From: Blastocystis sp. Blastoise
Lineage: Eukaryota > Protista > Bigyra: Opalinata
Reading direction: 5' to 3'
DNA: 64,000 nt
NCBI GenBank assembly: GCA_039096225.1
Contig: JBBPEB010000032.1
Coordinates: 930,001 to 994,000 of the forward strand
Shown here piece after piece: positions 71 through 41,060 of the stretch. The notes below the pieces were generated by a model that saw only the letters and a program-made list of their open reading frames with translations, did not search any database and had not been told where the DNA came from. A program made the translations under genes and the position numbers. How positions within the stretch are numbered: the stretch's first letter is position 1; each line of letters begins with the position of its first letter.

Positions 71-1018
71 AGTATAACTATTGGGTTTGAACTTAACGGT
101 ATATATACTTCCTTTATGTCCTTTAAATTCTTCTTTCTGTTTCCCGCCTTCTCTCACATCAAATATACGTATATACTGATCTTTCCCGCCACTGGCAAGA
201 AGGTTCCCATCAAATGCAATATCAACACTATATACATCTCCATGGTGACCTTTAAAGTTCTTTAATTCTTCAGTATTCCCGCGGGTCTCGCGACATCCCT
301 TGAAATATGTGACTTTCTTTCCTGTTTCGATATCCCATTGGATAATATCACAGTCTTTACTACCAGTATACACATAATGCTCATCAGGAGACAAACAAAT
401 ACAAGTTGGAGACAACTATATATATATATATAGATATAGATACAAATATTTATTATATACTAAAGATAGAATATTAAGAAAATAAGATATATACATGATG
501 ACCAGTGTAAAAACTTGATTTACCAAAACTTGTACTATCTAATTTATCTGCATATGTTGTGAATACATTTCCACGTTTCTATATATAATCAATCATAAAT
601 AAAGGATAAAATATTTAATCAAGTTTCCATATAAAAAAAAATATATATATATTTCAAATAAATAATATACTTCTTGAACATCTTGCTCTAAACGTTTTTC
701 AACTAAATTATCTAAATCATCAGAGTCTTCATCATCATCACCTTCCTCATCAGAACCTGCTTTGTTAGATCCTTCTTCTTGTTTAATCTTTGCTAAATAT
801 TCTTTAGCCATTCTTAATTTAGCTTCTTCTACAGTCTCTTGAACTTCTTCTTCACTAGACTCCTCACTGTTTTCAATGTTAGCAGCTTCATTATCAGAAA
901 TCGCAGACTCATCATCACTTGAGATTTCCCAATTATAGTCTTCTTTTTCTACTTTTTTGGTAGATTGATTTCTTTTTGATTTAGGTCTATTAGAACCACC
1001 AATTGGTCTTTTAGGCAT
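71..1018 (-). CDS. RRP9: U3 snoRNP-associated WD40 protein U3-55K/Rrp9, 5' part (3 exons seen; continues beyond window start)
   Basis: Acidic N-terminus with ETVEEAKLRMAKEYL motif, spliced via GT-AG introns to WD40 repeats (GHHLSPTCICLSPDEHYVYTGSKDCDIIQWD; GHHGDVYSVDIAFDGNLLASGGKDQYIRIFD). Confidence 0.85.
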
Positions 1019-1837
1019 TTTAATAAAAGAAAATTCAATAAAACAATATATTGCCTTTTACTCAAGAAAAACCAACACTATTGAAATATCCATTTAATCA
1101 GGGTTAATTCTATAAACTATAGTGAGATTTCTAAAATTTTCATGTCAAGTTATTATTTATAATTTTCATTCTTTCTATGTGGTTGTGTTGGTATTCTTTT
1201 TTTTATTCTTACCTAAGTCATCTTTATTTGTCCCGTCCTCTCTAAATACATGCATAAATCGATTAAAAGCAACGATTTTATCAATGTTAAAAAATTTCTA
1301 TTTTTTAAATTTAAGTTGTTTCATACAACATACGACAAACACTATAATTCTTATAAGTTTGAAATATGAAGACACTGCATACATTTTGAAAAATGATATG
1401 TGTATTTGGAAATTTTCTCTATTTATTGATCTTTATAACAAATAATAAATCCCGATCTATTATAGATTTTATGAACTCAATGAATTTGCTTTGAAATGTA
1501 TAGAATCAGCTCTATATTCAGTTTGATTAATTTATACAGCTATTTTTGCTTTTTACATTGCTATATTTTATATTTAAGCATTAAAAATCTTTTTGTAATA
1601 TACTAAATATATTTATATTGCTAGAATCATAGAGTCTAAGGTATTTTTTGGTTTCATGTTTTGCATCAACAGTGTCTACTTTTATACTTAGAGTCTACTT
1701 TATTAAGGAAATATTCATTTTAGTGTATAACAGATTATTAAAGATAATAATATATTATAAAACATGTCATCAAACAATAAAAAAGTGAGTTTTGTTCTAT
1801 TTTTCTTTTTGCTATCATTTAGTTATTTCAAAACAAT

Positions 1838-21685: not shown

Positions 21686-23635
21686 TTAATAGTTTTTTCC
21701 TTTTTTATCACAGAGATACGTAACGCTTTTATCCGTAAAGTTTTGATGAAGTTCTTTAATGAATTGAAACCATAGAATATTCATATCAACCGAGAGAGGG
21801 TCATGAGTTAACTGTTTATAGAATGTATTCGCAAAATCAGATCTATATTTATATATATAGTTATAGATATATAGTTATATATATATAATGAATTCATATG
21901 AGTATGAACTAGTTATTATTTATGATTATAATTATAGTTATTACAATAATTTCAATTCTATATATTTATTCTATATATACCTTGGATGTGGAATATCTAT
22001 AGCAAAAGCATCTTTCATAACAGCAAATATATAGCCACTATATCGAAGGTGTTCAATCCAGCTGATTTTATCTTTCCCGTAATTAATAAACCGCTCATCA
22101 AATGGCGGTAAAGACTCAGTTCGCTTCACCATTATATAACTATATAGAATCATATTATATAAATATAGATATATTTATGGATATATAATATAATAGTAAA
22201 CAATAAAGAATAAAGAGAAATAGAAACATGAATTAATATATATATATATATATAAGGTTCTTGTTTGACTGATTGAAAACAAGGAACTAACATCAACGGA
22301 TTATAATACTCCGCTTTATACCAATCCTCAGTTAAATAGTTCTATAGAGCATATATAATAATAATAAAACATATATAATAATAATAAACCATATATAAAT
22401 TAATAAACCATATATAAACTAATAGTATATATATAATAATAATATATATACATGAACCCAAGCATTGGGTCGAAAAGGTCGACAATTTTGTTCCGAAATA
22501 CAGTTTTTCAGTTCATCGTGGTTACGAGGGATGTGAGGGATCACTCTAACAGATGGAAACAGGTAATAAAACGTAATAGAAATTAATAATAATAATAATA
22601 ATAATAGTAATAATAAACATAATAATAATAATAATAATAGTAATAATAAACATAATAATAAATATCTTCTTAATAAAGTAAATATTACAATGATACTATA
22701 TGTAAATGACAAAAATACTTATAACAATATAAAATAGAGCAATATACTTATTAACACAAGCCTCAAATTCTTTACATTCGATATTATTCTTATACTCAAA
22801 GGCGGGCACAATGATCGCCATTAAATCATTCGATAAAACTTGTTGAGGTAAACTACGAAGAGATTCATATGTCTTCTCTATATATATAATATAATAATAT
22901 AAAAATAATATAATAATATAAAAATAATATAATATAATAATAAAAATAATAATAATAATAATATATATACCTGAGGGCCACATGTCCATGTCTGTTAACC
23001 AGAAATGAGAAGTAATAACATTAGCTACAGCGATGTTACGTAATTTGTTATAAGGATAAATAGATTCATTTAAAGGATGAAATTGAATGAGTTGAAGTCG
23101 TTGGGATAACGAGGCACTATTAACAAATGTGTCGAAATCATTCTGATCTTCTTGTTTCAAGTATATAGTGGCGACCATTGGACTATTAAAAAGAATTAGA
23201 ACAATAAAAGAGGTGAAGAAATGGTATATACCCTGACCATCTTTGCACGATATGTGCAAAATAAAAGAGTCTTTCACTCCTAAAAATTAATGAATAAATA
23301 AAAAAATATATAAAAATATATTAGTTACGACGTTTGAGTAATTAGAGTCACATCATAGTCTTCTTTTTGACTAACGGAACTATTAGAAAATACCATATCA
23401 TTCATATCGATCATCGACTTATTTAAATCACCTCTTAAAACCTATATTATAGACAGTTTAGATTATGTTAACATAAAATGATCTCCTTACTAATTCATTT
23501 TTAGGGAAACCTCCTTTAACAAGTAATCCAATTAAGCTGATATCAATAATAAGTAAAATAGTAAGAAACATACAAAACAAAAATTAAGAATGCTATAATT
23601 TCCATAAAAAAAAGTATTCTAAGATACTTCTTCAT
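21686..23635 (-). CDS. GT49-family (LARGE/B4GAT1-like) glycosyltransferase, 10 exons
   Basis: N-terminal TM; motifs DVTLITQ, RWSGP, YPYNKLRNIA, DMD, IVPAFE, EPY, PPFDERFINYGKDKISW. One intron needs a TT donor. Confidence 0.88.
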
Positions 23636-27710: not shown

Positions 27711-28107
27711 TTTGAACAATAAATTATTAAATAGTATATATATTATTATGTAATACTTAAATCAATGATTTAATTTAAATAAAAAATAGAAATAAATATT
27801 AAAAATCAAATCAATTCTTTTCAGAAAACAATTTATATACAGATACTAGAGAGGATCTATTTTCAGATTATTTCAAGAAGAATTCCAATAATATTTCTGA
27901 AATGAAAACTCTAGACTTTCTAGGATTTTCTGTTTTTCTCTATAAAAAAATAAGAGAAATCCAGGGGGTCATGCAAAATGGCAGCTTTCTATTATTTTTC
28001 CTTGTGTAAATGAAAACTTAGGGGTTGTCGCGTTTTTGATAAAATGTTTTTATTTTTGGAAAGGCAATATATATATATTGTTGATATTCCCACCTACACA
28101 ATTTAAT

Positions 28108-29276
28108 ATGGCTACTGCTAACGATATTAAGTTATTTGGCAAATGGTATGAGATGATTCACTGAATAATTTTTAAATATGAATAATTATCATTAATATTA
28201 TTTTTTAAATGTCAATTAAAATGATTTTTTCTTATTTTTATATTCTATTGGAGTTTCGAAGGAATCGAAATTACCGATATGGCTGTTAAGGTATATATAT
28301 TTTTTGTATTTATTTGTAATTAATTGTATATAGGATCACATTGCTGCTCATCCTAAGAACGCTACTTATCTTCCCCACACTGCTGGTCGTTATCAACTCA
28401 AGAGATTCCGTAAGGGTCAAGTATGTGAATTTTTTATTATTATTTATTGTCATTTTATTATTTTTTTTTATTATTTGTGTTATTTTTATTATATTATTAT
28501 TAATTTATTATTATTATTATTAATATTCAATTAAATATTTATAAATTAACCTTGATTATATATTAATCCATTATAATGTCCTCTTGTTGAAAGACTTGCT
28601 AACTGTCTTATGTTCCATGGTCGTAACACTGGTAAGAAACTTAACGCTATGAAGATTGTTGAATCTGCTTTTGATATCATCAACCTCATGACCGATAGAA
28701 ACCCCATTGAAGTATTTATATATATTTATTTATTATTGTGATTATTCATTTATTATTATTCATTTATTATTATTATTCATTTATTATTTATTATTGTGAT
28801 TATTCATTTATTATTATTCATTTATTATTATTCATTTATTATTATTCATTTATTATTATTCATTTTCTATATTCTTCTTCTATAGGTCGTCATTGATGCC
28901 GTTATCAATGCTGGTCCTCGTGAAGATTCTACCCGTATCGGTAGTGGTGGTGTTGTCCGTCGTCAAGCTGTCGATGTCTCCCCCTTCAGACGTGTTTCTT
29001 ATGCTCTTAGTCTTCTTACCCAAGGTGCATGTATTTTATTTATTATTTTTATTATTAATTTCTATATCATTATTATTTCCTAATATATACATCACAATAT
29101 AAATAAACTTAATAATAATTCTATATAAATGTGCTCGTGAAGCTTCTTTCCGTAACCTCAAGTCTATGTCTGAATGTTTAGCTGATGAACTCATCAACGC
29201 TTCTAAGGGTTCTTCTAACTCTTATGCTATTAAGAAGAAGGATGAAATTGAACGTGTTGCTAAGGCTAACCGATAA
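28108..29276 (+). CDS. RPS5: 40S ribosomal protein S5 (uS7), 6 exons
   Basis: [90 protein letters not shown]. Introns 1, 3 and 5 lack an AG at the junction implied by conservation. Confidence 0.97.
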
Positions 29277-30130
29277 GGGCTCTACCTTATACAGATATTT
29301 ATATATTTATTTCTTATATATATTATCTGTATTAAAAGGAGGTGTGGTGGTCTCCATTGTTTTTATCAACGATAATCCAAAAATAGATGTCCATCGTTTT
29401 GTTTTTCATTTTTTTATTATTCATTTTTCACTTTTTTTTTCCTATTATTCATTATTTGTCATTTAAATTTTTTTTTGACTTTGAAAAAACATTGCCTTGT
29501 TCATATTTTATGGTTATTAAAGAATAATGAATAAAAATAATAATAAGGCAAATTGTGAAATAAAATGAAAGTCAAACAAAACAAATGACGATAATAATTA
29601 TTAAAACATTAAACTAGTGAAAAAAATTAAATTGTTATGTTCTCATTCCCTCAGAATAAGTCCTCAAAGAGTAATCAGTACCGAAAAAAAATAATCATTG
29701 AACATAACATTACATAATAATAATAATATATATATAAATAAACTTTCACTTACTAGAATACATTAAATTCACTATGACAATAGCATAATTATCACTTTAC
29801 AAACATTTCATAAAGAAGAAAGATTAAATAATAAATTATGTCTACAAAAAAGGATTGAAGAGAAACAAATCACATCAGAATCAAAAGAATGACATTTCTC
29901 TTAAACACTGGAAATTACTAACACACAACAACCTTGGATTGATTGAATAAAGAAAAGAGATTCGGATGTGTAAAACCATGAGAATCACAATTATTCTGAT
30001 ACCTTTCTTTTTTGCTGACAATTGTTGAAATCATATTCAGTTCCGAACGAAAATTCATAAAAATAATTTTGTTTTATAAAAAATTTTGTTTTATTATTTG
30101 TGAATTATTTCCAAATTGAATTATTTAAAA

Positions 30131-31270
30131 ATGTTAAAGAGGTAATTAAATAAAGTATTGAATCATTTATCTGCGTAGTCATATTTCTCCTTCTGTTTTA
30201 TCTTCCGATTTCTCTCATTTAGCTGAAGAATCAAATAGAATGCTTTCTGTATATATTCTTGTTTGATTAAAAATATATTATATAACTATTATAGAGTGGT
30301 GCTGACTGGATTCATTTAGATGTCATGGTATGTTTTCATTATTTTGTTTTTATTCATCCTTTATTATTATTTATTTTATCTATAGGATGGGTAAATTATA
30401 TCATACAATCAATTATAATCATTTTTTGTAGACATTTTGTTCCTAATCTCACTTTTGGTGCTCCTGTCATCAAATGTTTACGTAAAAACTGCACTGGTTT
30501 CTTTGATTGTCATTTGATGGTTGAGAATCCTGCTTTTTATATTAATGATATGGCTAAAGCTGGTGTAGATCAATTTATATTTCATGTAGAAGCTGTAGGT
30601 ATGATTTTATTCATTATAAATATATTATTATGAATGTTATTTATGAATATTTTCTTGGGTAAAATAAAATAATTGGGTTTTTTTTATAATATAATAATTA
30701 TATAATATGTATATATATATGTCTTCTTCTTATAGAGAATGTAAAGGAAGTCATGGAAGCTGTTAAAGCTGCAGGAATGAAGGTAGGTCTCGCTGTTAAA
30801 CCCAATACTCCCGTTGAATCTGTATTCCCCTTTGCTAAAGAACTGTATGTTATTGTTATTAATTTTATTATTATTATTATTATTATTTTTATTTTTATTA
30901 TATATATATTATAAATAAAAAATAAATTATTATAAATATAAAGTGATGAAGTTTTAATTATGGGTGTTGAACCTGGATTTAGTGGTCAGAAATTTAAACC
31001 TGAATGTGTTAATAAAATAAAAGCTTTAAGAACAAATTTCCCTTCTTTAAATATTGGTATTGATGGTGGTGTTAATAACGAAACTATTGGTGCTGTCACT
31101 GAAGCTGGTACATATAATATATATATATATAATAATATATTCAATATTATTTTTTATAAATACATTATATAGGTGCTAATGTTGTTATTTCTGGTTCTGC
31201 TCTTTTCAATTCAACTGAACCTGCAAAATTTATTCAAGAATTAAGATCTGAAATTGAAAAACATTTATAA
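30131..31270 (+). CDS. RPE: Ribulose-phosphate 3-epimerase, 8 exons
   Basis: [51 protein letters not shown]. Seven GT-AG introns, including a 5-nt microexon. Confidence 0.95.
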
Positions 31271-31639
31271 ATTAGTATTTTTTAGTCTTTCTGTCCCTCA
31301 TTGTTTTTTTTATTTGTTGTTATTTACTTGTTTTTATAATCTTCTTTTGTTCATTTCATCTGTTTCATTCTGAAAACATATATATATATATATCGAATAA
31401 AAATCTATGTTATAAAAAAAGAAAACTATAAAAAACATTCACTAGTAGGCACGTTTTTCGCGTTAGATATATTTTTGGGTCACGTTAGATAACGAAAACG
31501 CACCAAAGCGTTCTCGCCTTTTTTTTAGACATACTTTTAAAATTTAGACAGACATCTAGCTTTTTAAGAAAGGATAAAATTTGAAAAATTAGAAATGAAT
31601 TATGAATTCATATATATTTTTTTAAATTTATTGTTTATA

Positions 31640-34600
31640 TGAACAAATTAGAACTTATTACAGTGATTATAGATGTTTCTAAGCAGTGTTCATGATGTGT
31701 TAGTATTTATTTATAAAATTTATCATAGTGTTTTACATCATTCTTATAGGTTTTCCATTCTGGATATCCTCTTCCTTTCAGACATTCTCCTTGACCAGTT
31801 TTAGAAAGGTACATAACATGGATGCGTTGTTTTATTTATTATAAGGTATTTTATTACATTTCTTTTTTAATTCACTTAGATTTCTCAGTTATTCTCGTCA
31901 GTACTTCTTCTAAATAACAAGTCAAGACAATATAGAGCGTATATAAATATATCTATTTAATTTTTTATTGCATTGGCACATTTCTCTTTTTTCTCTTTTC
32001 CTATCAAAAATATTCATTTGATTTTTATTTACCCTATTCATATTTTATATATATTTACAATTTATATATTATATAGAAATGTTATTTCTTACTCCATTCT
32101 TGAATCTTGTGGTTTCTCTGATATTTTCAAATACCAAATACGATATCAGTTGTAAAATAGTTTGTATATATATATGTTTATTTATTTGTATTTAATTATT
32201 TATTTTATCTATTTAATTATATTATTAATATAAGAATTTATTTATTTGTATATTTGTATATAGAATATATGCATTATATATATAGATGAGAAATGAGTTG
32301 GTATTCGTGATTATAATATTCATTATACAGATAATTTTATTACAAAACAACCTTCAAATTATCAAAAGTATATATATATTTATTATTATTATATTTTTTT
32401 ATATAGATATATATATTCAAATTTATATTCAAAAGAAGATAGAGTAGAAACAGTATGTGATAAAGTGAATGATTATGCTGATAATAATATTCGGGCTTTT
32501 GTTGCTATTTCTCGTATATATATATATATAATTAATGAATATAATTCTATATAGCTATAATATATACAATGAGTACCTATTATGATTATACTGCTGCAGG
32601 AGATGGATGTTGTTTCGTAGAGGATATTACTGATGATTTCCATAATAATGAAGTGATTTCTCGATTATGTTGTTTAGATCCCCAAGGGAATACTGACTTT
32701 CAGAAATGGGGAAGTTCTAAAGAAACTGGATTTGTGGAATCAGAACTCAATGATTATTATCTTCCTGTGTATATATATATTATATTTTTTTTTATTCTTC
32801 TTTTTATAGTGCATCTATGAAATCTACATATTCTACATTCAATACATGGTTTACAGAAAGTAATAATTCTTATTCTTTCTCTTTTCCTCTTATTGGTATT
32901 ATTGGTACCAAAAACCTTCTTACACTTAATTAGTATGTATATATATTATTATTATTATATTTTAGTTTATTATTCTATTAATTATCAATCTATAGATTGA
33001 ATCTATTTTGTTACCTGATGTATCATTTCTTTTCGTCATTTATTCTTACAATATACATTCGAAATAACAACTTACTTATTACTGTAAGAATAAAAAGTAT
33101 ATTATTTATATTATATATATATATATGGTATTTATATAATAACATATTTTTTATCTCTGTTTCTGATAAATATAATTCACTTATATATATTAATGATAAT
33201 AGGTTTTATATAAATATTTATTTATAGTTTCGATGTACATCCAGATATATAGAAGATTCTAGATATCTCATCACGTGATCACCTCGTGACTCCCTCAATC
33301 CCCCTTTAACGGATACTATTCTCGGTATGTACCTCAAGTTATATGTTGAGGTATATAGAGATAAACTACATTATTATTAATATTATTACTCTTTATATAA
33401 ATCTATAGAGGCTTCTTTATATGAATATATGAATCTATTACAATCATTATGGGCAGATATCGACTTTGGAAAAGATGTATATATATATATTATGTTATTA
33501 CTGTTATTACATATATAGTTTGAATACTTATTTTCTATGTATAAATTAAGCATATATATATATATATATAGTTACTCTCTTTCTTCACTTGAAACTATTT
33601 GTAATGAAAGGTGTATACATATATATATATTATGGTGTATTTATTATTATTATATATATAGTTATTAGAATTTTTTACCAAGTGATTTTCCCTCGCCAAA
33701 TTGATGTTGATGAATATATTAATACACTGAAATTTGCTGAAAAATGAAAAATGTAATTATATTAGTTTTTATTATGATTTATTTATATATATATATATAG
33801 TTATCAAGATCCTTATGATTATCAAAAATTATATATTAATATATATATATATATTGATGAGATCAAATATTAAAAATAAAATTGATGTATATAATAATAA
33901 TTATTATTATATATATATATATATAGGGAATTACTAATTTAACTACATTATTTCATGATCTTCAAACGATAAAGAAATCTGCTATTTATAAATCACTTGT
34001 TCAATACATACGAGACAGAGTATATAACTATATATATCTATATATTACTTATATATATTACTTATTATATATAGGATATATTAGATGTATTATTCCAACA
34101 GTGTTTAAATACACAAACATTACGATTGTCTCTCTCTCTCTTCTTCAACATATATGTACTGTTATCCTTGTATTTACTTATTATTATTATATTCTTTATT
34201 ATTATTATATATATACATATTCTTATTCATATATATATAGTTAACAAATAAGAATATTGATATATTTTATGAAGCTGTTCATAATAACCGTATATATGAA
34301 TTCATTCAAGCAACTACCATTATATGTCAACTCCTCCCTCTCTTCCCTAATCAACGTATATATATAGTATTATTATTATACTTATTATTATATATAGAAC
34401 ATGAATATTTACAAAATTTATTATTAAATACAAGTGTTGATATATGTACAGAACAAGTATATATATATATTTATATTTATATTATATATAGAGTATTAAA
34501 GTATTAAGTAAATTGTTAGTATTATATATAAATGACATCCCTGAATCACAACCTATTCCTGATTCTATTCGAAATTCTATTGTATATATTATGTATTATA

Positions 34601-35631
34601 ATAACATTCTTATTATTATTATAGAAAACAGTTGGTGAATATATTTTCCGTTAAGGATGCATTTGTACTCCCGAATCAAATGAAGAAAAGCACGTGATAT
34701 TCTCATTGATTCCACTTTATAAATCAGATAGCTTTGTATATATATATATATATATATATTATTATTATTATTATATATTATCATAGACTTCTTAACAACA
34801 TGGTTTAAGAATGCAATATATTTAAATGATGGTTATAAATCATTCTTCAATTTATTATATACTTTTGAACCTTCTCTGAAATCCATTTCAGTTATATACC
34901 TTACTATCTCGTTTCTTACTATAATATTATATCATATTATTATATATAATACAAAGAAGAGAAATAATATTAGTAAGTCTATATATATATAAATATGAAT
35001 CGAATTATATTCCTCAAGATATTATGTATACATTATTAGCAAGAACAGAAGAAATTATTCAAATAACTCGTTGTCCTTCTTCTTATATACCTCCTCAATT
35101 ACATACATTAAAGAAGATAAATAGTCATTCTATTTCCTTTAATATGAGTCATAATAGTTTAGAAGAAGTATATAGTCCTCCTTTTCCTCCTCCTCCTACT
35201 ACTACTAATTATTTCATAGGTGCATATAAAGATACAGGAAATGATTTGATGGATGATGATGATATGGAAGTACCTGAAGAAGAAGAAATAGGATTAATGA
35301 ATACATATGAAGAGAAAGAAAGAGGAGAAGGAGAAGAAAAACCTATTGGTGAACTGATTTATGAATTGAGTTATATACTGAATACTGTTGAAATTGAAGG
35401 TGAGAAGAAATAGGAAAGAAAAAAGAAAAAGAAATGATAGATATGTTTAGGTATATAGGAAAAAGAGAAGAAAATGAATATTGTATGTTTTATATTTATT
35501 ATATTTATTACATTTATTATGGTTTTATTATGTATAATATATAGCTATTGGTGTTCAATATGCATATTCTCTTCTTCGTAATCGACTGAAAACCGCGAGT
35601 AAAGAAGAAAAATATGATGTGAATATGATTT

Positions 35632-35717
<86 letters not shown>

Positions 35718-36620
35718 CAATCTATAGATATGTGAATCTTTCTTCATCTACTTATATGATCTTCTTATTAAATATTTTATTAGATATACTTAATTATTCC
35801 CGTGGTTATATACTACTTTCCTATTATCTTCTCCTTCATCATCCCTCCTTACAGTGGCTTGTTGTCTTTATAAATCAATAATCGCGGGAAATACTTACTC
35901 TCAAGAATATTTTAATTATGTATATATATATTCACTTTATATAACTTTTGATGTAGCATATTATATATTATTTACTATTTTATATTTGTTATTAATTATA
36001 TAATATATATATATATAGATAGATATTAGACATACTACAAACAAGGCTTATTATATACTTATGAACTACAGATACATCAATATATATACTGCTACATACC
36101 TCCTATAATACCAGCGTTTTATATCCCTCATTGAGAGCCATAATTATCAAAACATTATTATATGTCTTGTATATATATATATATACTATTATACTTATTA
36201 TATTTAATATTTTTATTTTATTATTATATATGTTATATAGACTGATAGATAATGCGCTTTGTATATTGTAGATGATGAAAAATCTCATATATATATATAT
36301 ACTAAATTATAGATATTTTTATAATTAATTTATATAGGATAAAGAAAGAGTCATATACATATATATATTTTTATTGTCTATTAACTTTTATATATGTCTT
36401 CTATTATGTTATATTTAATTATATATTATTCATTTTGTTTTGTAAATATTATAGAATGAGATTATTGTAAAGAATTCTTTTCGAATAAAGTAAAATGGAA
36501 TACGTATTAATCCTGTTTATATTTTTATTAGATTTTATTATTTTATGCTGATAACAACTTGCAAACCTTCTCAATTCATTCACTTACTTGTAATATCAAC
36601 AATCCATTAAAATAAAATAT
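31640..36620 (+). pseudogene. Decayed multi-exon gene copy inside the CACTA element (product unknown; boundaries approximate)
   Basis: More than 20 GTATAT...TATAG introns separate exon-like blocks with host-like codon usage. In-frame stops occur in the best frames (e.g. 32294, 32931, 33276, 33745, 34652, 36106), and some adjacent exons are frame-incompatible. Confidence 0.6.
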
Positions 36621-37118
36621 ATTATAATAAAAATGTTTGTAAAATGTGAATAATGAGGTTATAAACAACTATGTCAAATATATATTTTTATTCTCTATGG
36701 CATTTATATTATGAATCAAATACTATTATATATATATTACTCACAAATATTTTAAATTGAAATTACATTCTGTTAAAAATAACATTTTTTTGTTCTTTTA
36801 AGTCTAGAAACATGTTGTAATGAAGTAATCTAGCTTAATACATATAAAATACATTTATAACTCAATTTAGCATTCAAATAGACGTTTTAGTAGAAAAAAG
36901 GAGAATTTTAGAGAATTGATAACCCCTGGAAATAAAGAAATTTATAGAGACTTTTATTATAGAAAAAAAAGATTTTCTGTATTTTTAGGGCCATGTATGT
37001 ATTTTTAAAATAAATTCTAAAAAATTTCATATTTATTTTTATTTTTAATTGATTCGCAACTATTTTATATAGTTTTTAAAATGTATACTATATAATTTAT
37101 TTATTTTATATCATATAG

Positions 37119-37608
37119 GCTTACGGGTCCGTCGAAATAGCTTCAAATAGGTCCTGATTCCTCTTCATATTTTAAAGTTAACTCATGAGTTGTGTGGTTT
37201 AGGTGATCCGAAATCCGGTGCTATAAAAGGTATATATTTTTACATTGTTGTAGTTTTTTATTAATATTATCTTCTATAGGTTCAGATGTTGTAGGAGGTC
37301 TCGCTAGTCGACAACTTCATGGTTCTAAAGGTATTTAATTATATTAATATTTTTTGAAATTAACTATTTTTTATTTTTATATAGGTTCTAGGTTTTCTCA
37401 GTGGTTCCGATTGGTCAACAATTTCTTGGTGGTTGAAGGTATATTATTATATTATATATATTTGTTTACATCTATTTTTATAGTTGTGGTTTTTCTTCAT
37501 GGAGTCGCTTTAGAAGTTTCATTACAAGGTATATATTAATTTATTATCTATATTATTATTATTTCTATTATTTTTATATGTATAGTCATCAAAATGGTTC
37601 CCACTTAG
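37119..37608 (+). other. Short spliced locus (at least 5 GC-elevated exons) without a convincing ORF: second cargo fragment or ncRNA
   Basis: Four AAG|GTAT...TAG junctions separate GC-richer blocks; the first block has stops in all three frames. Confidence 0.45.
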
Positions 37609-37859
37609 TTAAAACAAACAAAAATAATTATTATTTTTCTTATTTTTCTTATTTTTCTTATTGTTTTAATTATTATATTATTATTTATTGTCTTTTGTTA
37701 ATATAATTTTAATTATCATTCACACAACGATTAAATTAATAAATAAGACAGGTTTTATCCAACAAATAGCACCCAAATTCTATCTTTAAAATACTTGATA
37801 ATGTGTTTAAAATGTGTATTAGAGAAAAATATAGATACCTTTAGAGCAGATAAAATACA

Positions 37860-38270
37860 AATAGACATATATTTGCCTTGTGTTAGAAAAGAAAAACACC
37901 AAAAACTGCTCTTAAAAAAAAGATGCCAGCTGTGTCAGACGTGTTAGATAACTTCCTGGCATATGGTTAGAGAAGAAAATGGCTCATTTTTTAGATAAGG
38001 TTTTGTTACCCAATAGATAGATTTTTTTACTAAAAACAAAATGCCTACTAGTGAATAGACAGATATTTGCCTTGTGTTAGAAAAGAAAAACACCAAAAAC
38101 TGCTCTTAAAAAAAAAGATGCCAGCTGGGTCAGACGTGTTAGATAACTTCCTGGCATATGGTTAGAGAAGATTTTTTGTCGTTAGATAAGAAAATAGCCC
38201 TTTTTTTAGATAAGGTTTTGGTTACCCATTAGATAGATTTTTTTACTAAAAAACAAAATGCCTACTAGTG
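37860..38270. repeat. Imperfect tandem duplication of the CACTA right end (37860-38053 and 38054-38270)
   Basis: Both units start AATAGACA(T/G)ATATTTGCCTTGTGTTAG and end ATGCCTACTAGTG; unit 2 has a ~20-bp insertion. Confidence 0.92.
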
Positions 38271-38445
38271 ATTGTTGAACACAAAAAAAAATAAAAAAAA
38301 ATATCGAAAACTGGAAGTTCGTTTCTTTTTTCAGAACTTTCTCTTTTTTATAAAAATGAACGAGAAGTACCTTTTAAAATAAAAATTTTCATCTAAAATT
38401 TTTTGCTTATTTAATTATTTATTATCATTTTAATTATACCCTTTC

Positions 38446-41060
38446 ATGATTAAAATGTCTTTAAATATGATTCATCTCTTCTTATTTTTCATGACCATTG
38501 TCAATGCAGCTATTCTTGGTATCGATTATGGTTCTGATTTCATGGTAGTCTCTATTATTCGTCCTGGTGCACCTGTAGAAGCTGCATTAGATTTCAACAG
38601 TAAACGAAAGACACCTACAGCTATTCTCTTCGAAGACTCTGCAACTACTTTTGGTTATGATGCTGTAGGTGCTGGTGCTAGAAAACCTCATAATGTATTA
38701 AATCACTTCAGTCGTTTCATTGCTCAAGGAACACAATCTGAATATGTTGGATATTTTAAAGATTTAGCTTATCCTTTTGAATTTGTTCCTAATAATCGTT
38801 CTACTTTAGATGTGAAGTTCCCTGAAAATACTGGATTCAAGGATATTGAAACTCTTTCTTCTGAAGAAGTTTCTGCTTTATTATTAGAATATGCAAAGAC
38901 TATTGGTGAACATGCTGATGATGGAAAAGAAATCAAAGATGTTGCTATAGCTGTTCCTGCTTTTTGGACTCATCACCAAAGAATGGCTATAAAGAATGCT
39001 GCTCGTTTAGCTGGTTTAAATGTATTAACTTTAATTGATTACCCTACTTCTGCAGCACTTCAATATTCTATTAATAAGATATTCCCAAATAGTACTCAGA
39101 AAGTTATGTTTTATGATATGGGAGGTTCTTCTACTCATGTTGTTATAGCTGAATATTCTACAAAAGTAATTCCTAAACAAGTTCCTAAGAGATATTTTAG
39201 AATATTATCAAAAACTTGGGATGAATTCTTAGGAGGAAATAATATTGATATTGAATTAATGAATTATTTTATTAATGATTTTGAAAAGAAAACTAATTTG
39301 GATGTATCCAATCAATATAAAGTACTTCATAAATTCCGTACTTTAGCTACTAAATATAAAGAGGTCATGACAGTAAATGAACGTATTCCTGTACATGAAG
39401 GAAGTATATATCAAGAGAAAGATTATAGTTTATTATTAGAACGAAAAACATTGAATTCACTTATAGAGAAAGATATTGCCGATCGTATAGCTGCACCTGC
39501 TCTTCAAGCACTCCAAGATGCTGGACTTACTAGTGTAAGCTTTATTTTTATTTTTGTTTTTATTTTATTTTTATGTTTATTTTTGTTTTTGTTTTATTTT
39601 TATTTTTATAATTATTTTTATACTTGATTTTATAAATTTTTTTTATACTTTATTTTATAACTTATTATAATAATGAATACCTATATCTTTATATAATAGG
39701 GTGATTTATATGGTGTTGAGATTATTGGTGGAGGTGTACGGGTCCCTCTTATTCAGAACATTCTTAAGAAGGCTCTTCATAAGGAGACTCTTGATACTCA
39801 TATGAATGGAGATGAAACTGTTGCTTTTGGTATATAGATATATATATAGATATTGATGGCTTAATTTATTTTATTATTTAATTATAGATCTATTATATAT
39901 ATATATATAGATGACTTGATTTGATTTATTATTTCATTATAGATCTATTATATATATATATATATATATAGGAGCTGCGTTCCGTGCTGCTAATTTAAGT
40001 CGTGCGTTTAAAACTCGATTTATAGGTATGACTGATTATAATCCTTATAGTGTGAAACTTCATCTCTATCGAAATAATGATGATGAATCATTTAATGAAG
40101 AAGAAGAAGAACCTAGAAATCAAGATTTCATATATAATAAAGGAGAAGAAGGATATACTATTGATCTTTTCAAAAAAGGAAGTAATTATAAATCACAAAA
40201 AACCGTGGGATTCCATGCTTACAAAGATTTCTATGTTCATGTTTATTATAATGATTCTACTCAACTCTCCAAAGGCAATCCTACCACTATATATCGTTAC
40301 AAAGTGTCTGGTGTTAAGGAGGCGTTGAATTCCGTTAATAATCGTATTGGATCCCCCAATATTACTATGATTTATGTGAATGACGCTGATGGTACTATTT
40401 ATGTACGTGACGCATTCATGAAGATTCGCTATGAAGGACAAGAAGAAATTGAGATCGATGTTCCGCTCTCTGAACAGACAGTTGATAACAATAATACTAC
40501 TACTGCTTCTGATAATAATGATACTACTACTACTACTACTACTGCTTCTGATAATAATGATACTACAACTGCTACTACTCCAGAATCAGATACTGTTTCT
40601 GATGATGCTGAAACACCTGCTGAGAATACGGAAACACCCAGTGAAGACACAGAAACGCCTGCTGAAAATACAACTGAAACTTCTGAAAAACCAAAGGGTG
40701 AAGAGAATAATTCTACAGAAACTGACACTGATAATGAAGAGAAGAAGAAAGAAGAAAAACCAAAAACTATGAAGAAGAAGATTATGGTTAATAAGAAGAA
40801 GATTCGTAAGATTCGTTTAACGTTGACTCCTGTTTATCTGGATAATGAAGAATATATATATCAACTCAACGATGATGAATTTAAAGCTAGTCAAGAAAAA
40901 TTAAAGTATATTCGTCGTATGAATGAGAAGAAGAGAGAGCATGGAAAAGCAGTCAATGATTTTGAAGGATATATATATTATGCTCAACAGCGTATTACTG
41001 AAGATGATTATATCAGTCATAGTCAAGAAGGAGAAATACAAGTATATATATTATAATATT

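Follow-up and report, generated by a model that had tools for sequence, protein, structure and literature searches.

Few signals of eukaryotic genes are as constant as the AG at the 3' end of an intron, which the spliceosome reads at its catalytic centre. Tandem TG/AG acceptors are known in human, and the nonconventional introns of euglenids have no GT-AG, have borders that are ambiguous via short repeats, carry no GT donor and rely on the pairing of their ends. Transcriptome-wide, 184 non-canonical splice sites were described in human, including GT-TG introns in GNAS and TSPYL2 as well as GT-AA introns, and many of them are alternative or depend on editing (PMC4176328). In the tunicate Fritillaria borealis, 95% of the introns break the rule, and their new 3' ends are recognised by U2AF subunits that have been duplicated and have diverged (PMC13326754). 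Amoebophrya harbours introner families with inverted repeats of 8-20 nt that form hairpins and that lie mostly at strain-specific positions (PMC7789003). Here we analysed RPS5, the gene of ribosomal protein uS7, in Blastocystis sp. 'Blastoise', which is the NCBI name of strain Rus-B from the tortoise gut. The gene lies in a stretch of 64,000 nt (G000:C21:930001-994000, hereafter the window, with a guanine plus cytosine (GC) content of 20-33%), and three of its five introns end in TG, AA and AT. We consider it likely that these are U2-type introns in which one base of the acceptor AG has changed and which are still spliced at the old junction, and that this tolerance belongs to the lineage rather than to the gene.

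According to the sequence and a script, RPS5 consists of six exons and five introns on the plus strand, with a coding sequence of 585 nt that ends in a TAA stop codon. Exon 1 (28108-28145) begins with the ATG and ends after the second base of a Trp codon. Intron 1 (28146-28250, 105 nt, phase 2) reads GTATGA...TATTG and is of the GT-TG type; its sole AG is found at 28151 near the 5' end, and an exonic AG lies 3 nt downstream of the junction. Exon 2 (28251-28290) is separated by the canonical GT-AG intron 2 (28291-28333, 43 nt) from exon 3 (28334-28420), which ends in RFRKGQ. Intron 3 (28421-28576, 156 nt, phase 0, 8% GC) reads GTATGT...TTATAA, a GT-AA intron without a single AG, and its in-frame stops make read-through impossible. 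Exon 4 (28577-28711) starts with CPLVERL and is followed by intron 4 (28712-28885, 174 nt), a canonical GT-AG intron with a body of ATT-rich simple repeat, and by exon 5 (28886-29024). Intron 5 (29025-29130, 106 nt) reads GTGCAT...ATAAAT (GT-AT) and has no AG either. Its junction slides over the 4-nt direct repeat GTGC, and the register orthologous to that in the human-gut Blastocystis contig L019, which is in phase 0, reads GC..GT. Exon 6 (29131-29276) includes the stop codon.

The position of these junctions follows from comparisons at the protein level, for which the exons were searched separately; neighbouring exon pairs were joined by script only for frame and stop tests. Exons 4, 5 and 6 match the consecutive positions 21-59, 61-104 and 107-148 of the Pfam profile PF00177 (Ribosomal_S7), and the uS7 chains of solved ribosomes align with exon 4 over its full length. 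Aligned exon by exon, the six translations tile the uS7 of Blastocystis ST1 (P0155, 194 aa) gap-free, with exon 1 covering residues 1-12; a single residue remains for either split codon, namely Trp at intron 1 and Gly at intron 5. The motif K-W-S-F, which is present in all relatives, results solely from the TG junction at intron 1. The RPS5 gene on a European Nucleotide Archive contig of another relative (L009) is intronless and colinear with the six-exon model. We additionally enumerated every in-frame, stop-free GT/GC..AG pair around introns 1, 3 and 5, and none of these pairs preserves the length of the protein. The least damaging ones remove 3 nt at intron 1, remove 60 nt or add 39 nt of junk at intron 3, and remove 6 nt at intron 5, and the best options delete 1, 20 and 2 conserved residues, respectively.

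In-frame GT-AG alternatives nonetheless exist for all three introns, and the public gene models use them. The NCBI model of this gene (P0269, 171 aa) reads GKCFEG, skips 20 residues after RFRKGQ and contains QGASSF, whereas that of a second copy on contig C1 (P0178) has 126 aa, with an internal Met as its start. P0269 takes the initial 60 nt of exon 4 as intron, and the public models do so for the initial 12 nt of exon 6. If the mRNA indeed used GT-AG sites only, the cell would make a shortened uS7 of 171 aa that lacks Trp-Ser, 20 conserved core residues (CPLVERL...RNTGK) and Arg-Glu. However, the DNA that would be discarded has a GC content of 42%, is identical in both copies and shows almost only synonymous changes compared to relatives. 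Over the 60 nt with which exon 4 begins, which have the same GC content, 8 codons are identical to those of L019, 11 differ only synonymously and one changes the amino acid. Because these changes are near-exclusively synonymous, the segment appears to be translated, and we regard a shortened uS7 as highly unlikely.

Searching the whole assembly (33.34 Mb, 34 contigs) with six-frame Pfam matches and at the DNA level, we found two nuclear copies of RPS5, the one described here and C1:170126-171261, besides two identical organelle-type S7 genes. Introns 1, 3 and 5 of the C1 copy have the identical non-AG ends. Among the 585 exon bases, the two copies differ by a single synonymous change, which lies in exon 5, compared to 29 of 531 aligned bases and 73 gap columns in the introns (Fisher p = 7.5e-9). 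It follows from this contrast that the two copies were assembled separately and that their exons are under constraint. The last 21 nt of intron 3 are identical between the copies despite 50 gap columns upstream, and the end of intron 5 is identical despite a 4-nt indel 10 nt upstream. The shared ends and the conserved exons argue against decay, and in our reading RPS5 is a working gene.

These observations also bear on whether the genomic bases are wrong, through an error in assembly or polishing, or whether editing restores the AG. The assembly is built from long reads of a genome with 23% GC, and adenosine-to-inosine (A-to-I) editing that turns AA into AI acceptors is known in human (PMC4176328). 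Against either possibility, the same three ends occur at two separately assembled loci whose introns differ elsewhere, three different types of substitution would be required, and the same pattern is seen in other genes (see below). Furthermore, the assembly methods cite short-read polishing (PMC12129017), and A-to-I editing is incapable of converting TG, AT or CG to AG. We therefore hold both wrong bases and restorative editing to be extremely improbable. An earlier sequence-only reading of this stretch, made without database searches, had assigned the ends TG, AA and AT to introns 1, 3 and 5, and its coordinates are exact base for base. The script confirmed its observations that introns 3 and 5 are free of AG and that the intron 5 junction slides over GTGC, and the enumeration of pairs showed it to be correct in that the next downstream AGs cause a frameshift or remove conserved residues. 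Its argument that errors at three acceptors are unlikely, given exons without decay, is strengthened by the same ends in both copies and by the purifying selection on the exons. It had also raised the question of another RPS5 copy; the one on C1 answers it with identical non-AG ends, and no canonical nuclear copy was found in the assembly.

In order to place the introns in their evolutionary context, we used relatives as an outgroup; the metagenome contigs yielded human-type subtypes only. L019 has GT-AG introns at the codon positions of RPS5 introns 1, 2, 3 and 5, and intron 4 is absent from it. At the position of intron 1, the L019 intron lies in phase 2 of the Trp codon, is 72 nt long, ends in TAG and has a TACTAAC branch site. 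Its counterpart of intron 3 (30 nt, GT..TAG) precedes the Cys codon in phase 0, and that of intron 5 follows the Gly codon (30 nt). The read-through open reading frames of other subtypes contain the same two 30-nt insertions with Val as the first and Gln as the last residue, which corresponds to GT...CAG. As the human-gut subtype is canonical GT-AG at the matching positions, the non-AG state of the tortoise strain is derived and arose at old major-type intron positions. The ends TG, AA and AT are each one base away from AG.

The remaining features of the three introns were compared with those of the major and the minor class. Their donors, GTATGA, GTATGT and GTGCAT, are of the U2 type (the genome consensus from the 25 introns described below is GTAT(A/G/T)), and the orthology with L019 at introns 1, 2, 3 and 5 links the gene to undoubted major introns. 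The terminal AG of U2-type introns is missing from introns 1, 3 and 5, although each keeps one of its two bases. A candidate branch site, TATTAAT, is located at -16 to -10 of intron 3 (28561-28567, plus strand) and would place the branch A some 11 nt before the junction. It resembles TACTAAC, could pair with the GUAGUA of U2 small nuclear RNA (snRNA) and lies within the block common to both copies. Branch sites of U2-type introns lie 10-40 nt before the 3' end. YTNAY motifs are present in introns 1 and 5, and motifs of these kinds arise by chance in sequence of 10% GC. The snRNA cores of the major spliceosome are canonical (GUAGUA in U2, ACAGAGA and AGC in U6, loop I in U5), and Slu7 and Prp18 are present in the assembly; the sequence-only reading had proposed to inspect these components for loss or divergence, and they look ordinary.

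Minor introns tolerate ends other than AG, so that a minor, U12-dependent spliceosome might remove introns 1, 3 and 5. About 250 minor introns have been described in Blastocystis ST1, and non-AG ends (AT-AA, AT-AT) are the usual non-canonical class among minor introns (PMC10639083). We found a full-length U12 snRNA candidate in the genome (G000:C24:844725-844868, corresponding to L100 1501-1644; 46.8 bits, E = 6e-7, below the Rfam gathering score of 53), which suggests that the tortoise lineage retains a minor spliceosome. The candidate retains the canonical branch-binding sequence GUAAGGAA, and minor introns in this organism should therefore have TCCTTAAC-like branch sites. The U12 branch site lies 10-26 nt from the 3' end of an intron. 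However, the U12 donor RTATCCTT is absent from RPS5 introns 1, 3 and 5, whose donors read GTATGAGA, GTATGTGA and GTGCATGT; there is no TCCTTAAC-like branch site in introns 1 and 5, and the CCTTGAT of intron 3 is deleted in the C1 copy. Moreover, the orthologous introns of L019 are plainly U2-type, with TACTAAC in intron 1. Removal by the minor spliceosome is therefore improbable.

Two further origins of unusual introns were considered and rejected. A derivation from introners or transposons is not in line with the DNA search of the whole gene, which matched only the C1 copy and the simple-repeat bodies of introns 3 and 4; introns 1 and 5 are unique in the assembly, and the intron positions are common to another subtype. 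A definition of the introns by structure was dismissed as well, since their minimum free energies do not fall below those of shuffled sequences (z of +1.8 for intron 1, +1.3 for intron 3 and +0.2 for intron 5) and their ends are unpaired.

To see how far the pattern extends beyond RPS5, conserved genes were located by their Pfam exon matches, the length of each intron was derived from the genome gap and the profile gap, and the junctions were then read. For RPS5, this method yields the true lengths of introns 4 (174 nt) and 5 (106 nt). The sample is small and drawn from conserved genes; uL4 (C33), uS2 and two HSP70 gaps on C7 were left out because of undetected small exons, and the second eS1 intron because it is ambiguous between GT-AG and GT-GC. 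Among the 25 resolved introns of 10 conserved genes, 17 are GT-AG, six are GT-nonAG and two are GG-AG. The GT-nonAG group comprises, besides RPS5 introns 1, 3 and 5, two introns of eL15 and one of an HSP70 paralog. Both copies of eL15 (L092 on C33 and L093 on C2, alignment A3) have an identical intron 1, which is GT-CG and carries the 7-nt direct repeat AATATCG, and intron 3 of the C33 copy is GT-AA. The HSP70 paralog on C7 has a GT-AT intron (L097 1925-2112) with a layout like that of RPS5 intron 1, as the AG 3 nt downstream would delete the conserved Glu of EFKR. The GG-AG introns, one each in eS1 (L090, C19) and eS6 (L095, C4), read GGATG...AG, and in both genes the next exon begins with GGTGA. 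Their lengths of 105 and 303 nt equal those predicted by Pfam, and a GT-AG solution exists for neither of them.

A GC-rich tRNA-like candidate was noticed about 250 nt past the stop codon of the C33 copy of eL15 (L092, minus strand), on the opposite strand. It is absent from C2 and marks the end of the duplicated segment.

Two inserts in ribosomal protein genes depart further from the rule. The single-copy gene eL18 (L102, G000:C18:739000-740700, reverse complement 905-1253, minus strand) contains 336 nt that consist of a 323-nt AT-rich insert and one copy of a flanking perfect 13-nt repeat, TCTACTACTAGAC. GT is possible in no register, only AT-AC or AC-AG, and read-through truncates the conserved C-terminus; the segment is more stable than its shuffles (z = -2.7). 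Intron 2 of eS7 (L103, G000:C20:151300-152800, reverse complement 839-982, minus strand; 136 nt) lies between copies of the 8-nt direct repeat ATGATCTC. No register of it offers GT or AG, and the exon that follows starts with the donor-like GTATAT. With eL18 and eS7 included, 9 of 16 introns in ribosomal protein genes are non-canonical, compared to 1 of 11 in HSP70 paralogs (p = 0.018). Several introns are present in many of the remaining ribosomal protein genes, and uL3 (two copies), actin (two tandem genes) and five cytosolic/ER-type HSP70 genes are intronless across the whole Pfam profile (G000:C3:1632298-1633389, C2:230369-231451 and C29:218631-222224, and HSP70 on C25, C16, C4 and C8).

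Such inserts raise the possibility that excision is guided by short direct repeats at the borders, at the level of RNA or DNA, rather than by splice dinucleotides. Direct repeats border every resolved non-canonical intron, with 2-4 nt in RPS5, 7 nt at eL15 intron 1, 8 nt at eS7 intron 2 and 13 nt at eL18, and in the latter two genes GT/AG is impossible in any register. The non-canonical introns of Amoebophrya likewise have direct repeats of 3-5 nt at their boundaries (PMC7789003). The RPS5 introns, however, have consensus GTATG-type donors and occupy old positions that are GT-AG in the sister lineage. Their repeats measure just 2-4 nt, canonical introns also show a microhomology of 0-6 nt, and no end-pairing structure is seen (z of 0 or above). 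For RPS5, excision guided by repeats is accordingly unlikely.

Taken together, these comparisons favour an explanation in which RPS5 introns 1, 3 and 5 would be old U2-dependent introns whose acceptor AG mutated to TG, AA and AT. The first step of splicing would proceed from a strong, normal donor (GTATGA, GTATGT or GTGCAT) and a TACTAAC-like branch site. In the second step, a 3' end with one of the AG bases would be accepted, rather than the search going on to the next AG. The GT-CG, GT-AA, GT-AT and GG-AG introns in other conserved genes suggest that this tolerance is lineage-wide and not specific to the gene. The DNA itself, the need for exact junctions, the ends kept in the second copy, the orthology, the recurrence in other genes and the ordinary snRNA cores are direct observations. 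That a spliceosome forms the joints, that it is the major one and how efficient it is are what we infer, and the major spliceosome requires the fewest assumptions. Of the three ideas put forward by the sequence-only reading, relaxed 3' recognition fits best, as non-AG ends recur in eL15 and the HSP70 paralog and GG-AG introns occur in eS1 and eS6, and it would be the probable basis of the joints. Another of these ideas was that such introns may serve to regulate genes of ribosomal proteins. Its suggestion of pre-mRNA editing finds no support, given that a single change of the A-to-I type could explain only AA and not TG, AT or CG.

A search for traces of transcripts with 134 sampled 31-mers of 28050-29350 (sampling error of about 0.04) gave four candidate sequencing runs. 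The share of these words was 0.32 in run X1 and 0.31 in run X2, a polyA metatranscriptome according to its record. Coding exons only would give a share of 0.32, and the expectation is 0.42 with all flanks counted as untranslated regions, 0.68 if introns 1, 3 and 5 are retained and 0.26 for the public model. The values of X1 and X2 argue against intron retention.

Several points weigh against splicing by a tolerant major spliceosome. The splice joints are deduced from DNA, and with 134 sampled words and an error of about 0.04, the 0.32 of the present model and the 0.26 of the public GT-AG model cannot be separated. Searches of the protein collection and of the cluster representatives found no cDNA-derived protein of this strain, just the two public models and relatives of other subtypes. 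The machinery examined offers nothing to explain the tolerance. A search for the large subunit of U2AF (TIGR01642) gave generic RRM/UHM matches only. In addition, the branch sites are guesses from AT-rich sequence. A strict ruler from branch site to 3' end was weakened as a candidate by intron 5, in which the putative distance differs by 4 nt between the copies, so that a simple ruler does not explain the choice of site. Finally, the eL18 and eS7 inserts hint that something besides ordinary splicing may act in this genome.

The off-rule bases follow a pattern of their own. In seven of the eight introns with a variant at one end, the departing base equals the base at that place in the exon across the junction, such that acceptor variants repeat the last bases of the exon before the intron, and GG donors the first bases of the exon after it. 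The last two bases are those of the upstream exon in five of the six GT-nonAG introns (TG, AA, CG, AA and AT), which none of 20,000 random re-pairings reached. The sixth, RPS5 intron 5, has its 4-nt repeat on the other side instead. Both GG-AG introns precede an exon that starts with GG. A G at donor position +5 is found in five of the six non-AG introns compared to 3 of 17 others (p = 0.009), a difference that may only reflect the class of gene. Intron 3 in the C2 paralog of eL15 begins with 6 nt (GATGCT) in place of the 7 nt GTATGTT; these 6 nt equal the start of the next exon, and the surrounding DNA is near-identical to that of the C33 copy. A 10-nt direct repeat results, and the GTATG donor is gone.

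As a tentative explanation, which we would not yet favour over its negation, the off-rule bases might not reflect random decay. Spliced cDNA or mRNA may template short conversion tracts that overshoot the junction while the intron is kept, and the spliceosome would tolerate the damage or a repeat-guided excision would exist. Such cDNA-templated conversion would also account for the ribosomal protein genes being affected the most. If the opposite-exon rule holds genome-wide, it would represent a new way for splice sites to erode or move. A candidate TT-AG intron was also noted in the window at 22140-22255 on the minus strand. It starts with TTATATA, the following sequence starts with the same 7 nt, and it fits the rule for copied donors.

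In comparison with the systems described above, the RPS5 introns resemble the human U2-type non-canonical sites in their consensus donor and branch region and in the departure from AG by one base, and intron 1, with its TG and an AG 3 nt downstream, resembles the human tandem TG/AG acceptors. They differ from the human sites in that three of them occur in one essential gene and are apparently constitutive, and in that 8 of the 25 resolved introns of conserved genes are affected. Unlike in F. borealis, most Blastocystis introns are GT-AG and the departures concern single bases. As in Amoebophrya, the exon/intron boundaries overlap with short direct repeats, and standard pipelines fail to annotate the introns, but the RPS5 introns are single-copy (except for simple-repeat bodies), unstructured and located at positions common to other Blastocystis. 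With minor introns they share the tolerance of a 3' end other than AG/AC in a lineage that has a minor spliceosome, whereas the defining donor and branch motifs of that class are absent from them. They are similar to the euglenid nonconventional introns in being non-GT-AG with borders blurred by repeats, yet they have GT donors and no end pairing. The Blastocystis introns are distinct from all of these systems in their combination of single-base departures, inherited major-type positions, a concentration in genes for ribosomal proteins and snRNA cores of the ordinary kind. The organism appears to splice several introns of essential, highly expressed genes constitutively without a 3' AG and with ordinary U2, U5 and U6 cores. 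It may therefore provide a natural system for asking what else defines 3' splice sites and how far proofreading can relax.

The findings have consequences for the annotation of this genome. The public models are wrong wherever such introns occur, as illustrated by RPS5 with its 171 and 126 aa instead of 194 aa. To our knowledge, a pipeline of BRAKER3 and StringTie does not model introns of this kind. This pipeline was used to annotate the assembly (PMC12129017), and in the genome paper the term 'non-canonical' is absent and 'splice' occurs once, in the title of a reference. BUSCO values are 42-43% for tortoise isolates compared to 55-61% for human isolates (PMC12129017). If mis-modelled introns are common, they may contribute to the low BUSCO values of the tortoise isolates and to an inflated protein divergence.

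With respect to the genomic neighbourhood, RPS5 and the HSP70-like gene downstream of it belong to a segmental duplication or haplotig (window 28000-41000 compared to G000:C1:170000-175100). The distance between the two genes is 3.6 kb on C1 and 10.4 kb on C21, and this difference in spacing fits the size of a putative 6.8-kb CACTA element at 31440-38270 of the window. An RPE gene is also found downstream of RPS5, where it covers 30679-30714.

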